Part shown: positions 1-20,300 of the stretch, piece by piece
Numbering within the stretch: position 1 is the stretch's first letter
Layout of the letters: each line of letters begins with the position of its first letter
Source of the DNA: Phaeosaccion multiseriatum
Lineage: Eukaryota; Protista; Ochrophyta, other classes
Direction of reading: 5' to 3'
DNA: 64,000 nucleotides
NCBI GenBank assembly: GCA_965112735.1
Contig: OZ218964.1
Span: 62,001 to 126,000, forward strand
The notes under the pieces: model-generated
Told to the model about the DNA's origin: nothing
Seen by the model: the letters and a program-made list of their open reading frames with translations, nothing else
The model's database searches: none
Program-made: the position numbers and the translations under genes

Positions 1-2551
1 GCTCAGCCCTTCTACAGCTGTGGTCCTCTAGGTAAAGGCGCGCTGATCACGGACGGAGAGGGTTTAGGCAGGGTTGTGAGCTGTGGATTGTCTCGCACTG
101 CGTCACCTCATCACCCCCCGACTCTCCCACTTGCCTCCCCCCCCCCCTCCCACCCATCCTTTTCAGGATTTAGTCTGGCGCACAACGGGCATATCACCAA
201 CGCCGCAGCCTTGCGTGCTGAGGTGTCCGTGAACTGCCATCTCAACACCAACTCCGACACGGAGGTGCTGCTGCAGGTACGTCCTCACATCGCACCGGAA
301 GGAGCCCTTTCGAGGCGGGGCAGGTCTCACCCCCCCAGGCGCTCTCATCCGGGCCTGCCTCTGACCTGTCCACAGGTACTGGCCCAGGAGCTACTGCAGG
401 GGCTGGGGCCTGCTCTCGCCAACACCTCCGAGGCTGCGCGGCCGGACAGGAGAGGGCTCCAGGACATCACGCCCGGTGAGCGTTGTACCCTCCGCCAGTA
501 CCGCCCGCCTGCTCCAGTCCCTGCCCCTGTAGACTCACTCAACCCTTCCTTCCCGCAGCGGAACTCTTCTCTGTAGTGGGCCGCGTCATGGCGCGCTGCC
601 GAGGAGGGTACGCCGTAACGGTCGTGCTCAACGGGGTTGGGCTGCTCGCCTTCAGGGACACGCACGGCATCCGACCGCTCTGCTTCGGCAGCAGGCCGAG
701 CCAGGGACACACAGGTAAGCTACCGCACGTTGGGGAATGGGGGGGTAACCAATCCTAAGGGCCAAGTGTTGTCGGCCCTGCGCTCACTTCGATTTTTGCA
801 ATCACCTCGTCAGACAAGCTGGACTGGGCCGCAGCAAGCGAGAGCGTCGGAATCACGGGCCTGGGCTTTTCGTTGAGGTACGTCCTTGGCGTGGGAGAGT
901 GTGAGGTCTGGGAGGCCATGATTGAGAGCCCCTGCCCTATGCCCTCTTCCCCCCCCCCCCCCGCTGCCTGCCCCTGTCCTCTGTGGCGCAGTCGCGACGT
1001 GTGCGCCGGAGAGGCCGTCTTCGTGGACACCCACGGAGCCCTCCATAGCGCGGTGTGTGCAAAGGGGCCTCTGCCCACATTCACGCCCTGCATATTCGAG
1101 TACGTGTACATGGTGCGTGCCTGTCCAGTCGGTACATAGGTGGGGTACTTCTGTGAGTGTACATGGAGGGGTTGTGCTTTTTCAGTCAACCCTGCGGCCG
1201 TTCCCCTCCAACCAGTGCCCCCCCCCCCTTGGGCCTTCCCGTGCCATGATATGCGTCAGGCGCGCCCCGACGCAGTACTGGACGGCGTGTCCGTGTACAA
1301 GGCGCGTGTGTCCATGGGCACGCGCCTCGCAGCCAAAGTGCAGCGCACCTTCTCTATGAAGAACAAGGAGGCGGCCCTCGGCTTCGGAGGCGTTGTGCCA
1401 GCGGTGGATGTGGTGGTGCCCGTGCCGGAGACGAGCCGCATCGCCGCGCAGCACTGTGCGAGGGCTCTAGGCGTGCCCTACGAGGAGGGCCTGACGAAGA
1501 ACAGATACATCGGCAGGACGTTCCTTCTCACGGTACGATCGTCAGGCGAAGAGCTTAGAGTTAGTTGGGGTAGGCCTTCGTAGTTAGTGCCCTTATAGTC
1601 TCCTCCGCTCTGCCGCTCCCCCAGGGCCAGAAGCTGCGGCAGGACAGCGTCAAGAAGAAGCTCTCCCCGGTGACCGCCGTGCTGGAGGGCAGGCACGTGC
1701 TGCTGGTCGACGACAGCATCGTGCGAGGCACCACGAGCAGGCAGATCGTGGCTATGGTCCGGCGAGCAGGTAAGGCCAGGGAAGGGACGGGAAGGGACGG
1801 GCGGGTTAGGTACGAGATGCAGCGGCGCTCAAGAGAGCCCCTCAAGAGAGCCCTCCCTTTGATGCGATGGCGCTCTTGTCCCACGAGGAAGCAGAAATGA
1901 CACCTCTTGTCTTGTCTGCGGACCTCACACACACCGCCCCTGCTGCTGCCCCTGCCCTCCGCCCCTGCCCTCCAGGTGCGACTCGCGTGACGTTCTGTAG
2001 CGCGTCTCCCGCCGTGCTGTACCCCAACGTGTACGGGGTGGACCTGCCCAGCCAGGAGGAGCTCATCGCACACGGCCGAGACATGGAGCAGCTCGCAAGG
2101 GCCATAGGAGCAGACGACGTCATTTATCAGGTAAAAGAGGGTAGGGTAGCTTTGTGCGCTGTGCTCTTTAGGGTAGGTGCATCAGAGGAGGTGAGGTCTG
2201 TAAGGTGTATCAGGCACCACCATTGCAGGCCTACCTGCTTGCCTTGTCCTTACCACACGCCACACACACACTGTCCGCTCTGTCTGCTCTCTGTAGGACA
2301 TGGCCTGCCTCCGAGAAAGCGTGACGGAGCACAACCCTGCTCTGCTGCGCTTCGAAGACTCAATCTTCACGGGCGAGTACGTCAGCCATGCCCCCCCGCC
2401 CTGCGCATTCGGCGGTCTCGAGGCGGCGCCAGCTGAGGACGCGACCCGGCCAGCGATGGAGGGGGGGGGCACCGAAGGTGCTGTTGTGGCAGCCACCCTG
2501 CCTCTGGAGGACCCCGCGGCAAAGGCGCCTCAGGCGGTGGACATTATCTGA
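1..2551 (+). CDS. purF: Amidophosphoribosyltransferase (glutamine PRPP amidotransferase), 5' end outside window, about 10 exons
   Basis: Spliced exons give AQPFYS..G (1-31), [19 protein letters not shown] (167-276), [42 protein letters not shown]|[25 protein letters not shown]-binding [31 protein letters not shown] and [11 protein letters not shown]. All introns are GT-AG. Stop TGA at 2549-2551. Confidence 0.97.
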
Positions 2552-3138: not shown

Positions 3139-3450
3139 ATGGCTGCACAGGGAGGCACAGTGCCCGCCGCAATGCTGCTGAAGGAAGGGGATCTTGTGGA
3201 CGTGGCGGCCCGCACGGGGAGAGGCACGAACAAGCCGGGGGGGCGAGCTCGGATCCTGCGCGTCGCGTGGAGCCCCCCAGCCGGGCAGCCACAGCAGGTG
3301 AGCGCAGCAGCTGCGCCCCCTCTCCATTTACTGTGCCTCTTGCCCTCTGCTCTTGCTGATGCTGCTCTTCCTTTCCCTCTCGCTGTCCTGTAATTCCTTG
3401 CCCCGCCTCTTCTGCTTCACCTCCCGTCCCTCCCTTCTCTCTGCTTCGGC

Positions 3451-3501
<51 letters not shown>

Positions 3502-4544
3502 TCCACCTTTTTATCCGCTCCCAGTCTCCTTCGTGGGCGGCTGGTCTCGGTCTCTACGACGTAAAGTACGTGCTCGGCGGGAGGGAGGAGCATGGCCTCT
3601 CAAGCCACTTTCTCACGCCATACCGAGAGGACGAAGGAAGGGGGGCGGGCAAGGGTAGCAGCAGGAAGCGCACGAGAGAGACCAGGGTCTCCCAGCTGTC
3701 TGCAGACGGACAGGACAGCAACCACGCGCAAAGCGCCGGCACTGATGGCAGACGGCAAGAATCCAGTCCGTCTCAGGTGAGCGCAGCTGTGAGCAGTGTA
3801 TGGTCTATAGCCTGTTGCGGGCTCCATCGGCAGCTGATCCCCCCCCCCCCCTCCCGTGTAGGACCTGCCCAAGTTCCTGGACAAGCAGGTCAAGGAGCTC
3901 GACAAGCTGCTGGAGAGGCTCGAGAGGAGTGACCAATACGAGTTCATGAGCAGAGGTGAGGAGAGAGAACAGGAAGAGCGCGATAGAAAGAGAGGCAGAG
4001 ACAACTGGGGGAGTGAGAGAAAGAGGGAGAGGGAACAGAGCTAGAGAGGGAGAGAGAGACAAGAGAGAACAGAGAGAACAGACAGAGCGAGAGAGAGTGT
4101 GAGAGAGCGAGAGAGGGAGAGAGAGAGAGAAGGGAGAGCGACCAGTACGAGTCCACAGTCAATAAGCGTGATAGGGGCATGTGCGCAATAAGCGGGGCAT
4201 GTGCGGACAGTAGTCACTGTCTAGGGACGCACGAGCAGAAGCAGCGAAAGATCTCCACGCCTTGTGTGCCCCTCACCCTCCCCCCGTCCCATCCCGCCGA
4301 TGCTCCTGGTGCTGTGCAGGGGACCCCCTCGAGGCCCTGGATGGCGAGTCCTCCTCCAAGGCGAACAAGACCACAGACGAGGGGGGCGGAGGAGTGGCAG
4401 GGTCGACAGGGGCAGCGGCGGATACGAGCACGGTGGGGGTGGCATGTCGCGGCCTGCCCGTCCCTCTCAATCTGCGGGAGATGAGATTTCGTGCGTCCGC
4501 TCTGGTGTACGTCCGCCCAGGGGCACTTCCGACGCCTCCCTCGC

Positions 4545-4575
<31 letters not shown>

Positions 4576-7500
4576 TGCCGTGCCAGCTGAGGCCAGCGCA
4601 GAGGAAGGGACGGAGGTGGCAGGGCGGCTCATGCAGCTGGACTGGGCCTCAGTAATTGGAGACTTTTCCACCATGTGCAAACGACCCATCGACGCCACGG
4701 AGCCCACAGAAGAGGTGAGTACGGCGAGCAGTGGTTAGGGGAGCGCTCGGGTGAGGGTTCGAACGGCGCCTTAGCTCAGCCCTCTCTTCCGGCCTCTCCC
4801 TTCCTCTTGCCATTCCTCCATCCCCCCTTCCCCAGGTGGGCACGCTGGGGAGGGAGTGCCGCCGGGTGCTGGAGGTAGGACTGGAGGGCCTGCACAAGCT
4901 GCAAGAAAGGTTCGAGAAGGAGCACGAGAAGCTTGAGAAGGACCAAGAGGAATACTCCCTGGAGCACCGCCTCCACATGCTGCTCAGCACCAACAAGGAG
5001 CCGTGCGTGCAGGGCAAGTGGCGCAGAGAGGCCTTTCCGCGCCGCAAGTACAGGCGCTACCTCACATCCTACACGGCCGGAGACCTGTCCCAGCAAGACG
5101 CGGACGAGGTCTTCAAGGAGCTGCAGACGAGCTTGCCCACGGGTTACCAGGGGGAGGCCTTCAGCTACGACGACAACGGCATCAGCGAGGAGTGGATGGC
5201 CGCGCTGTCGGAGGGTGAAGGGGGCGCGGCGGGTAGGGCGGGGGAGGGGGAGGGCCTCAACTACCAGAGGATGAATCCCTGCGCCATCCGGGCTCAGGTC
5301 AACGCCTGCCTGGACTCGCTCATCCAGAAGGTCACCGACACCTCCGCCAACGAGAGGGGCGCGCTGGACCAGCCTGTGCTGGAGCTGGGGTATGGGCTCG
5401 AGGAGGTGTCTGTGTGGGGCCTGGACTGCTACGCGCGTACCAACGTGGAGCTCGTGCTGCGGGACTCTCTGCAGTGGGATGCGGCTCGCAGGGCCGTGTT
5501 CGTGGAGGAGCTGCTGCTGCCCGTTATCAACGTGCAGACCGGCGAGGACGCCTGGAATATCGGGTGAGAAATGATGGGTCAGGCGAGGCGAGGTGGGCCC
5601 CCAGGCAGGCACATCCAGGCAGGCACATGGGCTGGCAGAGTGTGCTGGGGGCTATCCCGCCTCCTCTCTCTCCTCTCTCGCGTTGGCACATTTGTTTTCA
5701 TCATGCCTGCCTCTTTTTCTGAGCGCCTGCCTGCCCATACGCCTGTCTGCCTATACAACCACCTGCCTGCCTTCCTGCCCATATGCCTGTCCCCCCCGTG
5801 CAGCGGCGCCCTCGGCCAGCTCCTCGCGGCCCACGCCAGCGGCACGCGGATCATGTTCGACGGCGACAAGGCGGCTGTCGATGCCCTCACCCAGGCCCTT
5901 CGAGTGGTGGGCCCATCCTTCTTCCACTGCCATCCCAAGGTGAGGCCAGCACACACGAAGCGCCGCTGTGGCAATCCCCGTCGCCGTCACCGTCCTCAGT
6001 TCTCAGTCCTGACACTTTCTCTCTGTCCGTCCCTCTCTCTCTCTGCAGGGGACGAGCGTGCTGTGCACACACCCCTCGGGCATCCCTGCGCACACCTTCG
6101 TCAGCGAGTACCTGGGCGAGCTGTACCCGGCGTGGCGCTGGATGGAGAAGCAGGAGGCCGTGGTGGATGCGCAGCGCAAGGCGGGCCTCAAGCCGAGCCT
6201 GCCGGAGTTCTACAACATGCTGCTCGAGAGGCCGAGGTAGGCAGGCAGGCTGACTTGTGAGAAAAGGGGGCTGAAGAAACTGAAGGGGGTGGGCGTATTG
6301 CGTGTAGTATTTGTGGGGGCGGCCACGTTTGTCATGTGGCGGTGGCGGTGACTCTCCGACCCCTTGTGTCCTCTTTGCGGCATATGTTCTTAGGACCGAT
6401 CCCCGCGGATACAGCCTCTTATTCGTCGAGGCCGGCGGTTACCAGGCCAACCTGAGCAGCAGCCTCAGCCACAGCTGCGACCCAAACTGCACCACCGCAG
6501 TGGTGGTAAAGAACGGGAGGCTATTGATTGCGCTGACCACCACCAGAGACGTCCGGCCCGGGGAGGAGCTCACCATCGACTACAATAGGTATGTATGTAT
6601 ATATGTACATGTATGTAGGTATACAGACTGTGGGCTGGGCACTGGGCACTGGGCACTGGGCACTGGGCACTGGGCAGGGGTCGTGAGGGGTCTAGTGATA
6701 CAACCTTCCTCCTGCTTTGTGCGGCGCGTGCTGCCTTCTGACTCCCCCCCCCCCCCCTTCCCACCCTCTCTCCTCAGCGTGACGACGAGCGAGCACGAGT
6801 ACAGGGACGCCATCTGCCTATGCGGCAAGACGCAGTGCAGGGGCTCGTTCCTGCACTACAGCGGACAGCACATCTTCCAAGTCATTCGAGAGAAGTACGG
6901 CAGCCTCAACATGTTCAAGAGCCTCGTCAAGGTAAGAGGAATAAGCTCACAAAGAGGGCTAAGGCGTTCCCTCTCCTCACGCAATGCGCTACCCTCCTCT
7001 CTCTTTCTCTATGTGTGTCTCCAGACCGGCATGGCCCCCTCCCTTGAGGACGGGCACCGCAGCACGCTCGCCAAGCACGGGCTCCACACGGCGGCCCTTG
7101 GGGACGAGTGCCCGGACTGGCTGCTGGGCTTCGTGGCGGAGCAGCTGCGCTACATCGAGTTCGAGCGGAGGAAGCTGCCCATCGAGCTCATGCGCCTCAG
7201 CAAGGAAGACCTTGACGGCTACGAGTATACGCACCACGTAAGTTAGTGAGTACGTAAGTACTAGGCTTGTCGTCGATTGGAGTGAGTGGGGCGCGAGGTG
7301 GGGCGGAAGCTCTCGCTCCCTCACCGGCAGGACGATGCGCGTGTGGAAAGAGTCTCTGTTGGCTGTCGCTTCTTGGCGAGGGCATGTTTGTGACTCTCTT
7401 GCACTGCCTGTTGGTGCTATGTAATCACAGGTGGCGGACGCGGAGGCCCGCTGCGTGATGGAGCAGCGCGTGCAGAGCCTGGTGACGTGCGTGTCCTCCG

Positions 7501-10500
7501 TGTACCAAATCGTGAAGAAGCAGGGCATGTACCATGCGGACCCGTGCGAGACGGACCCAAGGCTGCAGTCGGGCGTGAGGAACGTTCCGCCCCCGTTCCG
7601 GCTGCTCTCGGACGACGAAGTGGTGCAGCTTCTGTGGACAGGCCAACGCAGCGTAGCGAGGCGACTCTTCGCGATGATCTCTCAGCTCGTGGAGCAGGGG
7701 AGGGTGGAGGTGTACACTAAAGAGGGAGGGGCGGTGGCCGAGGGAGGGGAGCGCGCCGAGAAGAGGAAGAAGGAGAAGGCGGAAAAGAAGAAGCGAAGGA
7801 AGGCCGAAAAAGCGGCCGCAGCAGCAGCAGCAGCGGCAGCAGCAGTCAGGGAGGCGAAGGCAGCGAAGGCCGCGAAGCCGCCTGCCGACAAGACAGTCGA
7901 GGCCACAGCAGTCGAGGCAACTATGGGCGCAGCCGCAGGAGTGGCAGGGGCGAAAGAAAGTACAGGAGCACCAGCAGCCTCTCCTCCCTCAAGCACGACT
8001 GAGACGGCTGCGCCAACGGGGGAGAGGGGCCACAAAGGGGCGGGCAGGGGTAGCCAGGGCGTCGACATGGAGGCAACAGACGACGAAGCAGAACCGACGG
8101 GGCACGCCGAACAGAAGGAGAGACGGGCATTGGCGGTCATCGTCGCGGAGACCCAAGGGGGCAGGGGGGGCGAGCTGGAGCGGAATGGGCGCAAGCGAGC
8201 GAATGAGACCGGGGAAGGGGGAGGGGGGGGGGGGAGGAGTCCCAAGATGCGCCGACGGATGAAGATTGCGGAGGAGAAGCAGGGAGAAGTCGACGCCATC
8301 GGACAGAGCCGCGCAGAGGCGGGGGAGGAGGAGGAGGAGGAGGAGGAGGAGGAGGAGGAGGAGGAGGAGGAGGAGGAGGAGGAGAAGGAGGAGGAGGATG
8401 GGGAGGAGGAGGATGAGGAGGAGGAGGAGGACGACGACGACGACGAGGACGAGAGTCCGAAGGGGAGGGCGGCTCACAAGCGGCAGAGCGCGCGCGACGT
8501 GCGGCGCGTGATGAACAAAGGTGAGAGAGATGGGAGAGAGGCAGCCCCCCCCCTCGGGTGAGAGAGACAGGGCTCCCTCCAAAGTCGCTGCTCAACGCAA
8601 TGCTTAAGAGGGGCTCATGGAAGCGAAGCACCAACAGTCATCGTCCTGAAACTGTGTGGCCGACCCCCGAACCTGTGTTGCTGACCCCTGAAACTCTGTG
8701 AACGTCCAACAGGCAACCCTCATGACCGAGTGCCCGTGTGGGACCCTGTCCGCCTCCGGAAGCAAGCCGGCCGCAGCGCCCCCGTGCGGCACAAGCTCGA
8801 CGAGTACCTGCAGCAGAGGCCGCACATGGAGCTCTACATCGGGCAGAGCGAGGAGTGTATGCACTACACAGACGTCAGGGATGTCTTGAAGGGGGCGACG
8901 GAGGCGGGGGGGGCGGGCGGCGCGGAGGCGATGGACGTGGACTCGGGGGAAGAGTCGGAAGAGAAGGACGGGGAGGTGAAGGTTCTGGGGGTGAAGGAAA
9001 GTAAGGCAGAGGGGGTCCGCGAAGAAGAAGCGGAGAAGGCGGAGAAGGGGGTTGGTGACGAGAAGGAAGGCGGGGGGGGGACAGAGGGGGGGGAGCAGGC
9101 GGGGAGGCGACCGGAGAGAAGCAGGCGGGCCAAACAACAGACCAGGAAAGCCGCCCTTGAGGAGGAGGAGGAGGAGGAGGAAGAGGAGGAGGAGGAGGAG
9201 GAGGAGGAGGAGGAGGAGGAGGAGGGGGAGGAGGAGGAGGGGGAGGAGGAGGAGGAGGAGGAGGAGGGGGGGGGGGCGGGGGGGAGGGGACAGGAATCCG
9301 TAGAGGAGGACTTGAAGGGCGGACTAAGCTTCAGGATCACGCCACGCAGGCTGGACCAGATCGAGAAGGTGGGGACACCCACCGACAGGTCAGTCAGTCA
9401 CTCAGTCAGTCACTCAGTCAGTCACTCAGTCACGCAGACACTCCGACACTCAGTCAGTCAGCACGTTGTTCAAGCACATCAGAGACGTGATGCCAACCAT
9501 ACCCCATCCCCACCCATGCTCGACGCCGCTGTCGCTGCTGTGGCCGTTGTCTGGTGTTCGTGTGATGTATCACTAACTGGTGTGTGTCTGTGTGCAGGAT
9601 GAGTCTGTACGACCCCACCACGGGCCGCAAACTCACTGGCAACTGTGCCCCCATGCGCTGCAAGCTAAGAGAGTACAACAACCGCAAGCCGTGGTGCAAG
9701 CTCTTCATGAACAGCAAGGAAGTCCAGGACGCAGAGGAGGTGAAGCGCGCCACGGCCAAGAAGGGCAAGGCTCCTTCTGCTTCGTCTGCCAGCAAAAAGA
9801 ATAAGGAAGCAAAGGGGGGGCAAGGAGTGTCGACACGGGGGGGAGACAGGGGCAAGGGCAAGAGGAAGGGGCAGAAGCCTGCGGAGAGGCTGGGGGGAGA
9901 GGGCAAAGGCCCGGCGAAGGGCTCTGCTGGCCAGAAGAGGGCGGGAGGAGCCCAACCGCTCAACCACAAGGCCAAGGGGAAAGAGAAGAACGGTTCAATG
10001 TCACCCACGGACACGAAGGAATTGCCCTTTGACTCCGCCACTGGGCTGTATACGGTACGTGTGTGGGGGTTGTAAGATGAGGAGTAGGCGACAAGAAGAA
10101 GAAGCTGGAGGAGGGGGGGGGGGGGGGAAGGCATATGGGGCCCATCATGGATAGCCTCTCCACAGGGCCGCTCGGGAGATGCTGTCTTCGCTTGCTTGAC
10201 GCCCCCCCCCCGTCCATTGCCATCCCCCCAGCCGGAGCAGCTGCTGGCGGACATGCAGGCCCTGCTGCGCACAAAGAACGCGGCCGTGCTGCACCGAGGG
10301 CACCTCCGCCAGGCCCTTCTCGAGCTGCGAGCGCTGCTGCTGCGCATCAAGAGCGTGGCGCACTCGAGACACGAGGCAGCGGCAGACGTGCTGCTCATGC
10401 TCGCTCACACGCGCACATTCCTGGTGGGGAGAGAATACAGGCCGCACATGTCCTACCCGGTCACGGTGCAGGTGAGAGCTCTGCAGTCTTCCCTCCAGGC

Positions 10501-13500
10501 CTTTGCTCGCTTCTTGTCAGTGTTCAGTCGAGGCGGGAGCTAAGCTGAAGCTAAGCTAACCCAAGCTTCTCCCTCCCACCCCTCCCCATACGCCTCTGCC
10601 CAGTCCCGAGAGCTCGGCACGCGTGTGCCCGCCTCTGTGCTGCACATGTACCTACGGGAGCAGCGCGCGCTCGAGGACCAAGAGAGAGAGAGGGAGCCCC
10701 AGCGGCAGCACCTCATGCGCATCAGCCAGGAGGAGGCCGCGCGGGCGGAGGTGGCCTGCGTGGAGCACAAGCAGCTCGTGACGCACCAGGAGGAGGAGGC
10801 GGGCAGGTACGCCAAGGACATTGACTTGCACATGGAGCGCCTCAACCGGCACCACCGCAAGGTCACGCAGCAAGAGGCCGCCAAGATGGCGGAGAAGGGC
10901 ATCGCGCTGCCCGTGCAGCAAAAGAGCCTGGAGATGATCCAGCAGAAGCACTACCGATACGCGCAGAGGGTGTACACCGAGATGCAGGGCGAGCTTGAGC
11001 GCGCAAGGGCCGTGGTGGAGGAGACCAAGGGACACCTGCGCAAGTTCGATGCCGCGCGCATCAAGGCCAGAGAGCAGCTGCAGCACCTCGCCTGCCAGGC
11101 CTGGGGCTCGGGCCAGCGCCTCTTCTACGACGGGCCGGTGGCCCGAGCGGGGGGCAGCGCGTCGGCTCCGTACCCGGGGAGGGGTGCGGACGAGGTCATG
11201 CTCAGCCCCGAGGGAGGGCGCACGGAGGAGGCGGCGAGCCGCGGTGGAATCGTGAGTGAGAGCACCGTCGGCCTTCCTCGGCCTAACCCTGCCGGTGCGG
11301 CTCCTCTGGCTGATGCTCCTTTGGCGGCTGCTCCTTTGGCTGATGCTCCTTTGGCGGCTGCTCCTTTGGCGGCTGCTCCTTTGGCTGATGCTCCTTTGGC
11401 TGATGCTCCTTTGGCGGCTGCTCCTTTGGCGGCTGCTCCTTTGGCTGATGCTCCTTTGGCTGATGCTCCTTTGGCGGCTCCTCCTTTGGCAGCTGCTCCT
11501 TTGGCTGCTGCTCCTTTGGCTGCTCCTCCTGTGGCTGCTGCTCCTGTGGCTGCTGCTCCCTTGGCTGCTGCTCCTTTGGGTGCTGCTCTCTTGGCTGCTG
11601 CTCCTTTGGCTGCTCCTCCTCCTGTGGCTGCTCCTCCTGTGGCTGCTCCTGTGGCTGCTCCTCCTGTGGCTGCTCCTCTGGCTGCCACTCCTGTTGCTGC
11701 TGCTCCTACCGTTGCCATGGCTGTTGCTCCTACCGCCCCAGCGGTGGCTGCTGCTCCTGCCATGGCTGCTCCTGCTCCTGCCGTTGCTGTTGCTGCTGCT
11801 CCTGGCACTGCTGCAGCAGCGGCCCCGGCGGTGACTCCTGGTGCTGCTGCTACCGCTCCTGCTGCGATGGCTCCTGCTGGTGGCGGTGGCGGGGCCGATG
11901 GAGGGGAAGAGAGGAAGTACTTGAACGGGGACGAGGTCATCTACGCCTTCCGCAGGGAGTACGGAGAGAGCTTCATCCGCGAGAAGCTGCTGCAGTGGTA
12001 CAGCGACGGGCTTGACGCCTCCTCCTCCACATCCTCCAAGGAGCGCACGCCTCTGTCGGGCATCAAGCCGCGCCTTGCGGAGCTGACAGGCTGTGTGCTG
12101 CTACCCGACCCGCTGCAGGCCTACACGGGCATCGCCGCTTACAAATGGCAGCAGAAGGCCGACTTACTCCTGGTGAGTGAGTGAGTGAGAGAAAGAATGA
12201 GTGAGTTGCTTCGTTGCTGCCCATGCTCTTTCTTCTCCATTCATTGCTTATGCTCTTTGTCCGCCTTGTTTCACCCCTCACATCCACTGCCATCCCTCTG
12301 TCGCCCCAGCAACTCGAGGACCCACAGCGGCGGCGGCTTGCGTGGTGTCCCTCGGTGTCGGAGGCCTTCCAGCTGCCCCCCCTGGGTCTGCAGCCCACCA
12401 CGCAGGTGTTCGGCAGCCCCATGCTCGACGCGTCCCTCGGGGAGACGGAGGGGCTCAAGCAGGCCGTTGCCACCCTCAGGGCAGAGTGCACGGCGGGGGG
12501 GAGGAAGGTCGGGGGGGCGGGCGGTATCGGCACCAGCAGTAGCGGCAAGAACAGCGGGACAAGCGTAGCCGACGAGCGACGCGGAGGGGCAGGGGAGGGG
12601 GGTGCGGCAGATGGGGGAGGGGGGGGGGGCAGGGAAGGCGGGTCTGCCAAGGGCAGCACGAGCAAGAGCAAGAGCAAGAGCAAGGGCAAAGGCAAGGGCA
12701 AAGGCGGCGAGGAGAAGAGTGGGGCGCTGCAGCAAGAGGAGGAAGACCTGCCGGAGGGCGCGTCTGCCCCAGCCTGCCACTGGGTGCAGGTGCGTGTGTG
12801 GAGGCCACCCGGGTGCTGCTGTGCTGGAACTGTCCGAAACCCATTCTGCGTGACCAAAATGAAGGATGGGGTCGTCTCACCCCTTCCCCCGCCCCTCCTC
12901 ACCTCTTCTCACCTCTCACCGCTCGTCAACGCATCCCCTGCCCCTCCGTCTCCCCCAGTGCGAGGCGACGGACTGCTTCAAGTGGCGCAAGCTCCCGTGG
13001 CACGTCGACGTGGCTGCAGAGCTGGGGGACGAGTTCTTTTGCTCAGACAACCGCTGGAACCTTGAGCAGGCCAGGTCAGTCGGGGGAGCCACCCACCTGC
13101 CTACCTGCTCCATCACCTCCCGCCCCCCCTGCGTTGGGACGGGCCTGACCCTAAACGCTTGAGACTCTTTGGGACTGTGTGGGCGTTGTTCTCCCCCAAT
13201 GGCAATGGTTTGGCGGCCTGAAGCAGGCAGGCTCGCTCCGCCCCTTCCTTCGCCTTGTCTTACCTCACCGGTCTCTCTTGTCTTGCCCTTGCTTGTGTCT
13301 GCCTGCCTGCCTGCCTGCCTGCCTGCCTTCAGCTGCTCTGCCCCCGAGGACGAGTGGCGGGACGACGAGTGTGAGGACGAGACAGTCGAGTGGAACGTGG
13401 AGCGCATCGGTGGCTTCAGAGAAGGCGACTGGATGGACGGCTTCTGCGTCAAGACCAACACCTGGTACCCAGCCAAGGTCAGTCACGAATGCTCCAGGGG

Positions 13501-14759
13501 GGGCATGGAATGAGGCGGGGGAGGGTAGGGAGGCGGTGTTGATAGGGTTAGGGTTAGGGTTATAACCCTGAGGTGCTAGGCTTGGTGTCACTGTGGATAC
13601 GGGGTTGGGTGCGGCTTTCCCCTGACTGTCATCCGCTGCGCCCCTCTCGATGTGCCCCTTTTGCCTCAGGTGGTGAAGATGGACAGTGAAAAGAAGCGCG
13701 TGCGTGTGCACTTCTACCGCTGGAAGGCCAAGTTCGACGAGTGGCTGCCCTTCGACTCCACGCGCCTCGCCGCCCTGCACTCGCACACCGCCCCCGTCAA
13801 GGAGACACAGACGTGGATCAAGTCCATGCGCAGGCTGCACGTGAGTGGCAGGGCAGAGGACAGAGGGCAGAGGACAGAGGGCAGAGGACAGAGGACAGAG
13901 GACAGAGGACAGAGGGCAGAGGACAGAGGACAGAGGACAGAGGGCAGAGAACAACCAAGACAGAGGGTAGATCAAAGCGGAGAATGGCCCTCCCTCCCTG
14001 TCGGTCTGTCTGTCTGTCTGTCGATGGACTTTAGGCCGGGAGAAGTTTGATGCTGGCTCAAGATGCAAGACGCATACCTCCTCCTGGCGAGGGAAGGGAA
14101 GGCCCATCCTGTCGGTGCTCATTCTTGCGTTGTTTTGCCGCTTCCACCCTATCTCTCTCTCTCTCTCTCAGGGCGAGGACTTGTCGAGCGACGAGGAAGA
14201 GCGGAGCTCCTCTTGCTCGGCTGACCGCTCGGAGGGGCCGGAGGGATTCGCCAACGCCTTCCCGGGGGAGGTGAGTGAAGGGGAGCTGCTGCGCGCATCT
14301 GTTTAGTGACCACGGCAGGGCACCCGGGGGGTCGCTAACAGGCAGGGGTGTTGGCCCATACACCTCGCAGACAGAGTCGCTGTCTGACAGAGTCCGTCCC
14401 AACCCTTTGCTCTCTCTCTTTTGTCTCTCTCTCTATATATATATCCCCCCGGCGGACAGGGGCCTTACAAGTACGCCTTCTACGACGTGTACTCGAGTCA
14501 CAAGCCCAACAGCAACCCGCTCTACACGGAGGAACACACCTCACACATCGGCACGGGCCCGTGGGACGCCCACCGCCCGCCCACCAAGCCCAACCTCATG
14601 GGCACCAGCAGCGCCAATAGCGCCGATAGGATCGAAAAGACTGGCGGTCTGACTGGGGGGGGGGGAGGGAAGCGCGCCGACCACGACCACGATGTCAAGT
14701 GCGGGCCTGAAGAAGAGGACGGCGCCGCCGATGATGGACAACCCCACAGACTTTGTTAA
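3139..14759 (+). CDS. Multi-exon ATXR3/SDG2-like histone-lysine N-methyltransferase (SET + post-SET) with extra chromatin-reader domains
   Basis: Core: VWGLDCY; HPKG..EYLGELYPAWRWMEKQ..PEFYNMLLERPRTDPRGY; SHSCDPNC..GEELTIDYNSVTTSEHEY..CLCGKTQCRGSFL. C-terminal blocks: AADVLLMLAHTRTF, YGESFIREKLLQWY, GCVLLPD, GSPMLDASL. These parallel plant ATXR3/SDG2 motifs as I recall them (GEVYPVWKWFEKQ, PEFYNIYLERPKGD, DYNSVTES, CLCGSQVCRGSYL, GSPMLDA). The start ATG (3139) and last exon (14461-14759) are inferred. Confidence 0.9.
11300..11880 (+). repeat. Coding 15-bp minisatellite (GCTCCTTTGGCKGMT) encoding APLAA/APLAD pentapeptides, decaying into Ala/Pro-rich sequence
   Basis: About 20 tandem 15-nt units are visible, in frame within ORF 10625-12184. 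Confidence 0.95.
13853..13950 (+). repeat. Intronic 7-bp minisatellite (CAGAGGR)n
   Basis: Tandem cagagga/cagaggg units just after the donor at about 13841. Confidence 0.9.
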
Positions 14760-14889: not shown

Positions 14890-17314
14890 CTATGAGGAGC
14901 CTCTCCGCCGGGCTCTGTGGCCCTGTGCGGCAGGGGCGGGCAGGCGGGGATGGAACTGCTGCTGTGACTGCTGTAACTGTTGTGACTGCTGCTGTAACTG
15001 CCGCTGCTGCAGCCTGTGCTCCTTGGGCCGCTGCTGCTGCTGCTTGCCGTTGCTGTGGCTGCGGAGGTTGTCTCTATCTCTGTCTCTGTCTCTGTCTCTG
15101 TCTCTGTCTCTGTCTCTGTCTCTGTCTCTGTCTCTGCCTCTACCTAGGGCGCTGCCGGAGGAGGGGGCCGCCCCTGCACCCCGCTGCTCGGACCCGCCAA
15201 CCGAGTGGGACCTGCGGAGCTGCCACTGTTGGTTGTGCCCCTGTTGGTTGTGCCCCCCGTCGCCAACGCTGCCGGAGACGCCTCTCCTGCCCTTCTTGGC
15301 GCCTGAGTGAGAGCGGCGAGGGAGGGCAGGAAGCACACACGCGAGGAGGGGGGCATGAGGGTATCAGAGGAGGAGCAAGCAAGCTGAGAGGACGACGGGC
15401 GGTGCGCGTACCTGTTCCCCCCGCCAGGTTGAGGAACATTCTCTGGCCTTGCTTAGAGGCGCTGCCGTTCTCCCTAGGGCTGTACGGGCCTATGTGCTCC
15501 TGCTCTTGCTCCTGTTGTTGCTCCTGCTGCTGCTGCAGCTGCTGCTGCCTGCCTGTGAGCCCCACCTCCTCTCTCAACCTGCTCGGGTATAGGCCGGGAC
15601 CCTCTGCGGATTGGGCCGAGCAAAGCCAAGCAGAAGGGACAAGCAAGGAGCAGCGTGAGAGGGTACCAGCAAAGGAGAGGCCATCCTGAGCATGCGAGTC
15701 TCCAACGAAGTGTCCTAGGCATCCACTCGCTATCCACTCGCCGCGGTCGCCGCTGGCAGCCAGGGGGCAGCGTCCTTGACCCTTGCCTTGGGCTGCTTGC
15801 TCTACCTACTCTTACCTGCTTCCCCTCGCTGCTGTATCACCAACTGCTGCTGCTGCTGCTGATCCGCAGCGGCCGCTACCCGGGCGTAGCCCAGCGGCCC
15901 ATAGCCCTTGCCGATCTCTGTGCTGTCCCCCAGGGAGAACATGCTGTCTTCCAGGCTCGGGTGCTGCTCGTGTTGGTGATGCTGGGTCGCCAGTTGGAGG
16001 GCGTGGTCGGGGCACGAGGAAGGGGCCGGTGCCGTACTGCCTCCGATGAGCTTGGAGGCCCTGCCAGTGCCCAGTGCCAGTGGGGAGGAAGGAGGATGGA
16101 GGACGGAGGGCCAAGAACACAGGCAGGCAGACAGGCAGACAGGCAGACCGGCAGATGGACAGATAGACGGACAGGCGGGCAGGCAGACAGGTAGACAGGT
16201 GGACAGGGAGACAGGCAGACAGGCAGGCAGGCGGACAGGCGGACAGGCGGACAGACAAAGTGAGAGATAGCGCGCTGCTGCCTCGCTGACTTCGACCCCG
16301 CCGGAGCTCTGAGTCTCGTAGCAGCTAGCTGACCCCCTCTCTTTGGCGCCCCTCACCTCTTGCGCAGAGCGTCGCCGATCGTCTGCCGCATGCGCTCGCC
16401 CTCGGCAAGGGCATGAGGATGAGGATGAGGGGTCTCGTGAGGAGGATGTTTAGAGTGGAGGGCGTCCTCTGACTCGGAGCCGAAGTCCCACTCGTCCAGC
16501 GACCCGGGGGCTCTGTGGGCAGGACGACAGGAGACGACGGGTAGTCCCCGCGGGAGGGGAGGCAGCAAGTGGAACGAGGAGGTGGCAATTATGGGGGGGG
16601 CTGGCAAGGGCACGTAGGGGCTTGTGGATAGCCGCAGATACAAGTGGCGACGATGCCTGTACTGCACCATTGTAGGTACCTGGCCAGGAGGCCGCTGTCG
16701 CTGCTCCGCCTGGCCACGGCTCCGAGAGAGAGCGCCGCCATCATGCCGTCAGAGCTGTCGATAAGACAACAGAGAGGAGGGCAGAGAGCAGAGAGGACAA
16801 AGGACAAACCACAGACCACAGAGAAGGGGAGGTGGACAGTCAGCAGGAGTGAGGAGATGAGACTGGGGACAGAGGATAGCTAGAGGACAGAGAAGAGAGG
16901 ACAAGAGACGGGAGAGGCAGGCAGAAGCCTCGCCTCCCGCCTTACCCCCTCCTCCCTTTCCTCCCTCCTGTCCCTCCCCTCCCCTCCCCTCCCCTCCCAG
17001 CCCCCCCCCGCCATGGCTCACCTCCCGTCCTTCCTGTCCCCCGCGAGGCCCTCATCCGTGTCTCGGAGGGCCTCCGTCGCCGCCTTCACCGCTGCTTGTG
17101 CCGCCATGTTGGAATGCCCTCCATTGCCTCCATTACGGCGCTGGTGAGGAGGGCAGGGGGGCTGGAACCCCGCCGCAGCGCCCCCCTCGGGGAGGGTGCC
17201 CCCCTGCGTTGTCCTGGTGCCGCTGGCAACACTCAGCTTCGTCAAAATTTGGACTCGCGCTTCTTCGAGCTCCGTGTCACCGTCGGACCCGTCTTTGTGG
17301 CGCACATCGCCGTG

Positions 17315-17353
<39 letters not shown>

Positions 17354-20300
17354 CCATGCCTTCGCCTCCGCCTCCACCTCCGCCTCTCCGCCCATCACCT
17401 TTGCGCTCGCAATGGCCTCATCAACGCCCCTGCTGCTGCCTGGATGACTGCCTGTAAGACTAGTATCGGCACCACCGCTGCCGCTGCTGCTGCTGCTGGT
17501 GGTGGTGGTGGTGGTGGTGGCAGTTGCGGCAGCGGCCGTGGGGAGAGGTCTCCTCTCTTCAGGAGCACGTGGTGCCTGCTCCGCCTCCGCCTCTGCGCCC
17601 CCTCCCATCAGGCGAGACAGCGTCTCGCTCAGCACCTGCGCACACACGCATAACACGTGTCAGGACACAGCCACACAGCACAGGTGTCAGGACATAGCCA
17701 CGCACGCACGCACGCACGCACCTGGTTCCTCTTGTTGGCCCTCTCGAGCTCTCCTCCCCTCTGTTGCAGCAGCAACGACAGACTCTCTTCCTGCTGGCGC
17801 AGACGGAGCTCGGCAGTCGCCTAAAGCGCACATTATGCACACGAGACGAGGGAAGCCCAAGCAAGGCCAGAGAAGCCCAAGCAAGGCCAGACATTGAGCA
17901 AGGCGAGACATTGCGTCTGATGAGACAAACGCTCGCTCCACCGCGGCCTCCACCCCCAACTGCCCATTGCCCCCTGCCCACCCACGCACGCACGCGCCCA
18001 CGCACGCCCCCACGCACGCCCTAACGTTCTACTGACCTGTTCCTGCATGGCCTTGTCGAGCTTCTCCAGGGCTCTGAGCAGCTCCGCCTCCTTGCTCGTG
18101 AGCTCTCCCTCCAGCCCGCTCCTCGCCTTCTCGCTCTCCTTCAGCCTGCGAGTGGCGTCCCTGAGGTTCCCCTCTGCGCTGTCCTTGGCTGCCCCTGCTG
18201 CCGCGAGTTTGCGGCGGAGGGAGGAAGTCTCTGCATCGGCCGCGGCGCTGCTGCGCGCACTCCCGAACCTGCGTGTGCATGTGCGTGTGCGTGTTTGTGT
18301 CGGGGGGCAGAGGCATAGGAGCAGAGCAGGGCAGAGCAGAGCAGAGCAGAGTAGAGCAGGGAAGGACAGTGCAGAGCAGGGCAGGACAGTCGGTTGAGAG
18401 ACGGCAGGTAGTCGTGCCTCCTTCCCTCCCTCCCCTCCTCCTTCCCGCCTCCTCCCCCCCTCCTCTCCCCCCCTCCTTCCCGCCTGACAGTCCGAGCGTA
18501 CCTTCCCGAGGCTGAGCCTGCTGCTGCTCCTGCCGCGTCCACCCCTGGGGCGAAGCCTGCCCCCTCCCCATATGCCTCCACCTTGTTCTTCAGCAGGGCG
18601 GCCTCTCCCTCAAGGCTGCGGTTGCGCTCCTCGGCTGAACCCCCCCCCCCCCGGGGTAGAGGGATAGAGAAGACGGCGAGCGGCGCAGACAGTGAGCAAT
18701 CAAATTCGTACGTGAGTGCGTGCGTGAGGGTGGGAGAGAGTCGTGAGGTGGCGAGGAGGTGGCAAGCAAGTCTGCAAGCCAAGGTGGATGGCCCCCCTCG
18801 CCCCCCCCCCATCCACTGCCATCCCGAGCCAGAAGCATGTCTCCGACTGCCTGCTCTGCTTACCCTCTCGGAGCTCCGTCTGCAGGGCCTGCAGCGCCTG
18901 TGCGAGGGCCTGTGTCTTGTGCTGCTGCCCAAGTGCCTCCTTGCGCCTCTGCGCCGCGTCCACCTCCGCCTGCCGCAGAGAAGCCTCTTGCGCGACCTTC
19001 AGCAAAGCAAAGCAAAAAAGGGAGAGAAGTGGGGGGCGTAGAGTCAGGCCAGAGAGCAAGGAGAGCAAGAAATTGCGTCAGTGACGCCCTTTCCTCTCTC
19101 CGTTGACGACCACAGACCTCGAGTGTCCTCCGGTGGCTTTGCTGGTCCGCTGCCCTCTGCTCCTTGACCTCCTCGAGTCTCCTTTGCCAGTCCGTCGCCA
19201 GCTGTTGGCGGAAGTCTGCCATTTCTTGCCGCTGCCCATCCTCCATCTCCTGAGGAGTCAGGCAGTAAGTAGTTGCCCCAAACGAGGCACACAGGTCCAC
19301 ACATCCGTATGCAACGGTCAGTCAGTCAGTCAGTCAGTCAGTCAGTCAGTCAGTCAGTCAGTCAGTCAGTCATTCAGTCAGTCAGTCAGTCAGTCAGTCA
19401 GTCAGTCAGTCAGTCAGTCAGTCAGTCAGTCAGTCAGTCAGTCAGTCAGTCAGTCAGTCAGTCAGTCAGTCAGTCAGTCAGGGGGCGATATATGTGCGTA
19501 AGGGAGCACTGAACGAAATACACCCCACACACAGAGCAATGCACGATGCACACACACCCTTCCTCCACGCCGTCCCCCCCCCCATTGAATACCATCGCCA
19601 TTAAATGCCATCCCCCTTGCGGCCGCCCACCTTGAGCACCCTCCGTGTGTCGTCGTTAAGATCCCTCTCCCTCTGCTCCGCCTCCGCCTGGGCCCTCACA
19701 GCGGCGTCGAGCTGTCCCCCCTGGGCCTCAAGCTTGGCGCGAGACTCTTCCAGGGCCTCCTCTAGCGTCTGTACCTTGCTCCTTTGCTGCAGCACAGAGG
19801 CGGAGGCCGCAGCAAGCTCGGACTGGGCACAGGCAGGGGGGGGGGGGGGTAAGGGCAGTCGCCAGTCACTCGCCACGCCCACCGCTCCTCTCCCCTCCCC
19901 TCTCCCTCTCCCTCCTCTCTCCCCTCCGCTGTCTCCCCTCTCCCCCTTCACCTCCCCCTTCTCCGCCTCTCCCCTCTCCCCCTTCTCCCGCCTCTCCCCT
20001 CTCCCCCTTGCCGCGCCTCTGCCCTCCCGCCCCCTCACCTGGGCGCTCTCCAGCTCCGTCTCTTGCTCGGCGTGCGTGCCCTCCAGTGTGGCAAGCCTGG
20101 CCTTTGCGTCCGCCGCCTCCGCCCCGAGCTTGGCGTTGAGCTTACTCAGCTCCACGATGCGCAAGGCTCCATCCTTGTCCCTCGCCTTGTTGCTCCTATC
20201 CTGCGCTTCCAGAGTCCTCCTGAGCTCCTCCCCCTCCCCCCTGAGCTGCTGTACCCTCTCGTCGGCGGCCTCGAGTGAGCTCTGCGCCTCGTTGAGCTTC

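Follow-up and report, generated by a model that had tools for sequence, protein, structure and literature searches.

The window analysed here is a 64,000-nucleotide stretch of Phaeosaccion multiseriatum DNA (assembly GCA_965112735.1, contig OZ218964.1, positions 62,001 to 126,000 of the forward strand), and the subject of this work is the gene on its + strand at positions 3139-14759. We hold with considerable confidence that this locus is a single gene, an ortholog of the ATXR3/SDG2 SET-domain methyltransferases of histone H3 lysine 4 (H3K4), in which the catalytic core is accompanied by accessory modules in a plan common to its orthologs. The gene is an unusually expanded member of a known, widely distributed and little-studied architecture and not an undescribed system.

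Gene model and catalytic core

Window positions 3139-14759 hold no long continuous open reading frame (ORF); open segments change frame at canonical splice sites, and G+C across the gene region is about 60-66%. We spliced the gene model by hand from the DNA, checking splice sites, phases and translation. The resulting model runs from an ATG at 3139 to a TAA at 14757-14759 in 21 exons, all on the + strand: exons 1-7 at 3139-3297, 3525-3776, 3862-3955, 4320-4714, 4836-5563, 5804-5939 and 6049-6236; exons 8-14 at 6394-6588, 6778-6931, 7025-7237, 7431-8520, 8713-9388, 9598-10054 and 10232-10471; and exons 15-21 at 10604-12172, 12310-12789, 12959-13074, 13333-13477, 13670-13840, 14172-14270 and 14460-14759. 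All 20 introns are GT-AG, with donors that are mostly GTGAG and acceptors that are mostly pyrimidine-rich followed by CAG, and the phases agree at every junction to give a product of 2618 aa without internal stop, about a quarter of which (671 aa) is low-complexity sequence. A preliminary description of this DNA had placed all of its domains in one chain after splicing, and this was borne out by the single frame and by the support that homologs give to the exons.

That support comes from several directions. When the SET/post-SET/SDG2_C piece (window 6308-7243) was searched against 1.84 billion representative proteins, 768 matches were obtained, the top one being a 1504-aa protein of Chrysoparadoxa australica (P0001); the annotated protein of this locus itself was not among the matches of that search, the best of which is 51-62% identical. 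Six homologs compared with the whole 64-kb window by tblastn matched only within exons of the model, collinearly and on the + strand alone, and the ends of the matches are the ends of exons (6046-6237 against exon 7 at 6049-6236; 12956-13072 against exon 17 at 12959-13074). Exons 1, 5-13 and 15-19 have direct tblastn support, and for exons 2-4 and 14 the support comes from Pfam and from profile alignments. In blastp comparisons the spliced protein is collinear with many single proteins, which contain in order the pre-SET region, the SET domain, the three SDG2_C blocks and then aa 2340-2470, the stretch holding the zf-CW and the C-terminal barrel.

The core of the protein, like all features described below as part of the gene, is encoded on the + strand. 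It begins with a family-specific pre-SET region (aa 346-560; 4971..5855) that is seen by blastp, tblastn and a local hidden Markov model (HMM), the last of which finds it conserved in 203 of 271 homologs. The SET and post-SET domains follow (aa 561-745, exons 6-9; 5856..6865), identified by alignment and by Pfam SET (PF00856), which scores 44.7 bits against a cutoff of 22.4 (E 2e-11) on window 6308-7243. Their motifs in the window protein are YLGELYP, EFYNMLLERP, SHSCDPNC, GEELTIDYN and CLCGKTQCRGSF, and the patterns YxGExYP, EFYN..LERP, HSC.PNC, GEE.T.DYN and CLCG..CRGS are common to the window protein and the ATXR3 proteins of Acorus and Drosera in the alignment. In homolog searches the SET domain groups with ATXR3 and not with SET1/MLL. 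No AWS, N-SET or WIN elements occur in the window protein: Pfam found no N-SET, RRM, PHD or FYRN/FYRC domains in the window pieces, and when the protein was searched by pattern for a WIN motif of the SET1/MLL type adjoining the SET domain, the sole look-alike was an unrelated ARAE at aa 1705.

SDG2_C (PF19633) starts directly after the post-SET, and its profile positions 48-104, 121-197 and 198-275 are covered in order on three pieces, two of which score 57.3 and 37.1 bits against a cutoff of 27 and the third 22.1 bits. The domain is broken twice in the window protein. Its first block (aa 746-935, profile about 48-197; 6866..7721) matches PF19633 at 1.8e-15 and 8.8e-5 on two pieces; the second (aa 1580-1690, profile 198-275; 10232..10696) matches at 2.5e-9 and by a local HMM; and the third (aa 2095-2245; 11909..12498) is matched in many homologs by blastp and tblastn and in 191 proteins by a local HMM.

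Accessory modules

All the modules named in the preliminary description are present in the order it gave, namely an N-terminal barrel, a bromodomain-like module, SET/post-SET, two BRK-like repeats, SDG2_C, an APLAA repeat, zf-CW and a C-terminal barrel. Their support by segment is uneven: SET, SDG2_C and zf-CW pass their Pfam cutoffs, whereas the BRK-like repeats stay under theirs, and the bromodomain-like module and N-terminal barrel have no Pfam match and are supported by fold.

The C-terminal modules are the clearest of these. The zf-CW (aa 2338-2388, exons 16-18; 12775..13354) scores 38.6 bits against a cutoff of 27.5 (PF07496, E 1.1e-9) on exon 17 alone, and in the alignment it keeps both tryptophans (WVQC, KWR) and all four cysteines in the pattern WVQC ... 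C.KWR ... C ... C. In searches of the PDB the CW profile matches the CW structures of ZCWPW1, ZCWPW2, MORC3 and ASHH2 at 1e-9 to 1e-7; solved complexes of CW with methylated H3K4 are known for ZCWPW1, MORC3 and ASHH2. The C-terminal barrel (aa 2408-2470, exons 18-19; 13412..13792; WYPAKV ... VHFYRWKAKFDEW) is, judged from its profile matches, a Royal-family domain of the Tudor-knot/MBT/PHF20L1-like kind. The window piece alone reaches Pfam MBT at E=0.025, under the cutoff, because an intron splits the domain, but at this position four homologs (P0016, P0152, P0196 and P0137) score above the cutoff for Tudor-knot and a fifth, P0197, above that for MBT. A barrel profile that includes the window exons matches PHF20L1 Tudor 1 (1e-9), the MBT repeats of L3MBTL3/1 and the chromo-barrels of MRG15/EAF3 in the PDB, and the aromatics typical of a methyl-lysine cage are kept in the alignment (WY...HFYRW...FDEW).

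At the opposite end of the protein lies a Tudor/SH3-like beta-barrel (aa ~12-90; 3172..3635), which intron 1 splits and which was identified by a local HMM and by the fold of an ortholog. Its conserved motif, G..V.V..R...G.NK.GG..RI ... Y.VKYVL, stands at the N-terminus of 16 homologs. Pfam gave no match to it on the window pieces and the barrel profile found none among PDB sequences, so the Tudor call comes from the fold. An AlphaFold model of residues 15-262 of the ortholog P0151, built with the family alignment (pLDDT, the predicted local distance difference test, 83.7), contains a barrel of five strands and, after it, a bundle of four helices; exons 1-2 of the window protein align with this barrel. 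In Foldseek comparisons with the PDB the barrel matches PHF20 Tudor 2 and the TDRD3 Tudor (target-normalised TM-score, TMt, 0.82-0.83), and PWWP and SH3 barrels are also among its matches. The positions conserved in the alignment are Arg, Asn-Lys, Gly-Gly and Arg-Ile, and no obvious aromatic cage is seen there.

The bromodomain-like four-helix module that follows (aa 138-345, exons 3-5; 3862..4970) is degenerate and carries low-complexity inserts, including poly-Q. Pfam Bromodomain (PF00439) has no match on the window pieces, and profile matches in the PDB, to PB1 and BRD9, are weak (E about 0.2). An hhalign comparison of its alignment with the Creolimax bromodomain gave E 0.0016 with a probability of 16%, and we treat it as weak support for that reason. 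By phmmer, window aa 255-345 match residues 279-340 of P0137, partly within the bromodomain of that protein, and the first helix of the region is found in 43 homologs by a local HMM. In the same alignment columns P0110 and P0137 have textbook bromodomains (Pfam 55.9 and 49.2 bits), whereas the position is degenerate in diatom proteins and in the clade of the window protein; where P0110 and P0137 read ..NAM.YNP, the window protein reads ..KRPIDATEP, so that the acetyl-lysine-binding Asn of the BC loop has become Thr. The left-handed bundle modelled in P0151 (helices 116-135, 157-165, 179-196 and 206-247) matches the bromodomains of BRPF1, SMARCA2, BRD9 and PB1 at TMt 0.60-0.70, those of SMARCA4 and BRD7 are also among its matches, and taken together the matches of bundle and barrel are almost nothing but bromodomains and Tudor/PWWP/SH3 barrels. 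We regard both the N-terminal Tudor-like barrel and the bromodomain-like bundle as confirmed at the fold level by the model of this ortholog.

Between its blocks SDG2_C is interrupted by two long insertions. The first, of about 640 aa (7722..10054), separates the end of the first block at aa 935 from the start of the second at aa 1580 and consists of Glu/Lys/Ala-rich low-complexity sequence with the two BRK-like repeats; it is the largest among the homologs examined, where the family median is 71 aa and land plants have about 24 aa. The second insertion, at aa ~1690-2090 (about 390 aa), consists of a charged helical stretch and the APLAA repeat, a coding tandem repeat of 15 nt x 27.7 (11296..11707; Tandem Repeats Finder score 517) that encodes (A/D)APLA pentapeptides.

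BRK-like repeat 2 (aa 1428-1466; 9599..9715) matches Pfam BRK (PF07533) at E 4.3e-4 and repeat 1 (aa 1203-1245; 8715..8843) at E=0.064; repeat 1 aligns with repeat 2, with the repeats of orthologs and with the Pfam-positive BRK of Chlorokybus. The element also occurs in orthologs, with two copies in P0001 and one each in P0151 and P0153, and an HMM built from the repeat-2 matches of these three finds, in the set of 271 proteins, the Pfam-positive BRK of the Chlorokybus ATXR3-family protein P0268 at E 1.7e-5. An AlphaFold model of repeat 2 (pLDDT 75) has as its top six Foldseek matches in the PDB only BRK domains, those of CHD8, CHD7 and BRG1, at query-normalised TM-scores (TMq) of 0.54-0.59 and, for three of the six, root-mean-square deviations of 1.8-2.0 A over 38 columns; the E-values, at 0.2-3.9, are weak owing to the small size of the domain. 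We accept the repeats as BRK domains at the level of the modelled fold. A BRK profile run against PDB sequences gave only spurious matches to WD40 'vklWD' repeats and no BRK, and it was discarded in favour of the fold evidence. Coding GAG arrays at 8316-8453 (46 copies) and 9159-9267 (36 copies) put poly-Glu on both sides of repeat 1, and both BRK cores begin right after an intron (introns 11 and 12, which differ in phase).

The loops of SDG2_C that are expanded here hold modules in other lineages as well: HMG boxes in P0137, Homeobox_KN in P0020 and P0021, a Myb domain in the second loop of P0205, and BRK-like repeats in P0001; in P0110 an HMG box stands after a truncated SDG2_C. When ten of the largest SDG2_C insertions of other homologs were searched with Pfam, eight contained no recognisable domain and two contained Homeobox_KN, which makes DNA-binding modules at this insertion hot spot occasional and not general. 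That these loops repeatedly took up DNA- or chromatin-binding inserts in different lineages may nevertheless deserve a note.

Occurrence across the family and genomic surroundings

The preliminary description had put this gene forward as the best candidate for an undescribed system, and here the homologs decide against it. Of the 188 homologs in which local HMMs detect both SET and the last SDG2_C block, 117 have a zf-CW after SDG2_C and 84 a barrel after the zf-CW, and in precomputed annotation most entries of the homolog tables bear the Pfam string 'zf-CW, SET, SDG2_C', among them Chrysoparadoxa and the diatoms Attheya, a Bacillariaceae metagenome-assembled genome (MAG) and Pseudo-nitzschia. 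One ortholog, P0151, has all the modules and a further relative, P0137, has most of them. The architecture is therefore already in orthologs at the level of databases, but no paper discussing it was found: our literature search turned up none describing a zf-CW or Tudor domain in ATXR3 homologs, and its hits pair these terms only in plant gene-family surveys.

Individual orthologs show how closely the plan is shared. P0151 (1465 aa) has the N-terminal barrel, the bromodomain-like module, SET, SDG2_C with a BRK-like insert, zf-CW and the C-terminal barrel, as in the window protein. Its contig is 5166 nt long, only about 770 nt beyond the coding sequence, which leaves no room for introns or for a second gene, and in that relative the whole module plan is thus one uninterrupted coding sequence. 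P0001 shares the module order and the two BRK-like repeats and lacks the N-terminal part; it carries one repeat in each SDG2_C insertion, whereas the window protein has both in the first. The partial protein P0153 of Phaeothamnion confervicola is an ochrophyte ortholog with the same module order, and P0206 is a collinear ortholog from an MMETSP transcript marked complete. Over the pre-SET/SET/SDG2_C core the ochrophyte orthologs are 51% identical to the window protein, which is about 1100 aa longer than they are through its poly-Glu, poly-Ala and APLAA low-complexity expansions. P0137, a protist protein of 1695 aa seen on several ENA/JGI contigs, has the same order of bromodomain, SET, SDG2_C with a DNA-binding insert, zf-CW and Tudor-knot, with every domain above its Pfam cutoff; it differs from the window protein in its canonical bromodomain (NA..YN), in two HMG boxes that take the place of BRK and in the absence of the N-terminal Tudor-like barrel.

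Other parts of the plan are more scattered. Bromodomains are carried within the family by Creolimax P0076, P0058, P0110 and P0137, and further accessory modules include PHD, Myb, HMG boxes, Homeobox_KN, GATA and BRK. Besides the window protein, just three orthologs were seen to have the BRK insert, and to judge from these occurrences both it and the N-terminal barrel are lineage-restricted parts. P0076 (EukProt id CFRG5212T1), which we take to be from Creolimax fragrantissima, a holozoan protist, combines a PHD-like domain, a bromodomain, SET and a near-complete SDG2_C (231 bits). SDG2/ATXR3, the main writer of trimethylated H3K4 (H3K4me3) in Arabidopsis, is still labelled 'plant-specific' (PMC6528313), but at the level of the family this label fails, since SET with SDG2_C is present in this holozoan protist, in diatoms and in many other protists. 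A 54-aa fragment of the methyltransferase family, P0162 (in the cluster of P0005), was deposited as a hypothetical protein of a Bradyrhizobium MAG; its presence in that bin is probably eukaryotic contamination.

Upstream of the gene, pieces of an ORF on the + strand at window 1-573 and 1810-2433 encode a class-II glutamine amidotransferase domain (Pfam GATase_6, 2.7e-7). Its sequence motifs read like amidophosphoribosyltransferase (PurF). Together with a locally G+C-poorer stretch before the ATG, this unrelated metabolic neighbour bounds the 5' end of the methyltransferase gene. Microsatellites occur in nearly every long intron of the gene: (CTG)16 at 3452-3499, a GA-rich tract at 4011-4138, (CTGGGCA)6 at 6635-6676, (GTCA)18 at 9389-9461, which starts exactly at the donor of intron 12, (CTGC)7.5 at 13299-13328 and (AGGACAG)15 at 13850-13953. 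Just 3' of the stop lies a (TGTCTC)12 array at 15069-15141 among CTG-rich repeats at about 14950-15260, and no gene was recognised from 14760 to about 19600. An open frame of 477 aa on the - strand at 19604-21034 has a coiled-coil look, with much Glu, Lys, Ala and Leu, and no Pfam match; it may represent an exon of an oppositely oriented neighbour gene.

Function, alternative readings and comparison with known writers

What the protein does can be proposed from its relatives. SDG2 and SDG701 have H3K4 methyltransferase activity in vitro (cited in PMC12744764), and in the alga Nannochloropsis oceanica knockout of NO24G02310 shifted the peaks of H3K4me2 and lowered H3K4me1 (PMC12744764), which supports the H3K4 assignment in this lineage. 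We infer from these three enzymes that the SET domain of the window protein methylates H3K4, presumably to the mono-, di- and trimethylated states, the SET/post-SET with SDG2_C being the part that would write the mark. The zf-CW most plausibly binds methylated H3K4, because it keeps the two Trp and the four Cys found in CW domains that bind H3K4me, and it would thereby tether the enzyme to chromatin that bears its own product, a read-write arrangement. The C-terminal barrel, whose closest relatives are readers of low methylation states (PHF20L1 Tudor 1, MBT, MRG chromo-barrel), would for this reason add a second methyl-lysine contact and may read a low methylation state. With the bromodomain Asn lost and the cage of the N-terminal barrel missing, not all of the supposed readers are likely to read histone marks: the bromodomain-like module and the N-terminal barrel are more likely structural, protein-binding or nucleic-acid-binding parts, and the BRK repeats, too, are more likely to bind protein or nucleic acid than histone marks.

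The preliminary description went further and saw in this protein a self-contained machine that both reads and writes H3K4 methylation and may not need COMPASS-type partners. A writer and a likely reader of its product do stand in one chain, no WIN motif adjoins the SET domain, and the literature search described above found nothing on these modules in ATXR3 homologs. We nevertheless consider it improbable. The architecture is common and Pfam-annotated among public proteins, two of the supposed readers are without the residues for binding histone marks, and independence from partners is not something that can be read from sequence; the missing WIN-like motif does not show COMPASS independence. 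Moreover, Arabidopsis SDG2 acts with S2Lb and COMPASS-like proteins: among the proteins that co-purified with S2Lb, a homolog of Swd2, SDG2 was the most abundant, and a pull-down joins S2Lb to WDR5 (PMC6528313), a link that argues against such independence.

Several points weigh against our own reading of the locus as a single ATXR3/SDG2-type gene with these modules. The exon model was derived from the DNA and from homology, its course through the interior of the low-complexity exons is tentative, and further introns may lie inside the long exons 11, 12 and 15 of that kind. Exons 20-21 (14172..14759), which encode the C-terminal tail of 132 aa, have good splice sites and no homolog match in either a search of the homologs with this tail or tblastn of six homologs, so that they are a tentative end of the model and the true 3' end is uncertain. 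The N-terminal folds come from P0151, whose identity to the window exons is 21-45%; the Foldseek E-values are weak (0.01 to 0.9) for all three folds, and the case lies in which structures rank first. BRK-like repeat 2 scores 20.3 bits, under the Pfam cutoff of 23, and the substrate and binding specificities are carried over from relatives.

The reading frame could also be taken for an artefact joining at least two neighbouring genes, for example separate N-terminal Tudor/bromodomain, SET and C-terminal CW/Tudor genes, since at about 63% G+C long open frames come easily and are frequent in all six frames here, and since homologs lend no independent support to the low-complexity exons 11, 12 and 15 or to the tail exons 20-21. 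We reject this explanation as very improbable. All 20 junctions are canonical and in phase, the conserved blocks flanking each low-complexity stretch belong to a single Pfam domain (SDG2_C 121-197, then 198-275), and single orthologous proteins span the same module order collinearly, one of them on the short contig described above; the upstream gene, of glutamine-amidotransferase type, is unrelated and is separated from the ATG by a G+C-poorer gap. That the accessory modules are decaying relics on a plain SET enzyme, or even that the locus is a pseudogene, could be argued from the lost bromodomain Asn and the extent of low complexity, but we reject this as scarcely credible, as the frame is intact over 21 exons, the CW Cys/Trp and barrel aromatics are kept, and the N-terminal barrel, BRK, CW and C-terminal barrel are conserved among distant orthologs, which indicates purifying selection.

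The single, expanded ATXR3-type gene thus remains our preferred reading, and the value of the locus itself lies in careful annotation and not in discovery. The family to which it belongs is widespread in protists, and outside land plants a zf-CW with a methyl-lysine barrel is usual among its members, to which some add a bromodomain, BRK, HMG box or homeobox. It is conceivable, if rather unlikely, that the multi-reader form of ATXR3 (bromodomain, SET, SDG2_C, zf-CW and methyl-lysine barrel) is ancestral, that land plants exchanged the readers for GYF domains, and that the SDG2_C loops are docking sites for lineage-specific modules. If so, in algae of this kind the product of the enzyme would be bound by its own zf-CW and barrel, H3K4 methylation would reinforce itself and COMPASS subunits would be needed less or not at all, and the modules in the loops (BRK here; HMG, homeobox and Myb elsewhere) would bring the H3K4 writer straight to DNA. 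That these algae place H3K4 methylation through a writer bound both to its own mark and to DNA is a testable idea, and it has implications for how GYF domains and COMPASS-like partners became necessary to the plant enzyme.

Among known systems, the stramenopile NO24G02310 is, like the window protein, a member of the ATXR3 family (PTHR46655), a comparison made from the paper, which omits accessory domains (PMC12744764). Land-plant ATXR3, for which Acorus P0134 and Drosera P0147 stand in for Arabidopsis ATXR3/SDG2 and rice SDG701, shares with the window protein the SET/post-SET motifs and the SDG2_C directly after SET, and it is likewise a large, mostly disordered protein. Each of the two land-plant proteins has two GYF_ATXR3 domains in its N-terminal part, then SET, and ends in an uninterrupted SDG2_C; both are without zf-CW, barrel/Tudor, BRK or bromodomain, just as the preliminary description had said of Arabidopsis, whereas the window protein has flanking reader modules, an SDG2_C split by about 640 and 390 aa, and no Pfam match to GYF in any window piece.

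Outside the family, a SET writer and a methyl-lysine reader are found in one chain in ASHH2/SDG8 (SET with zf-CW), in MLL1 (PHD3, bromodomain and SET) and in Clr4/SUV39H (chromodomain with SET), as in the window protein, although the SET subfamilies differ. The bromodomains of MLL1 and of the window protein are further alike in being atypical and probably without acetyl-lysine binding. ASHH2 writes H3K36 and reads H3K4me1; the reader of the window protein, in contrast, would recognise the product class of the enzyme itself.

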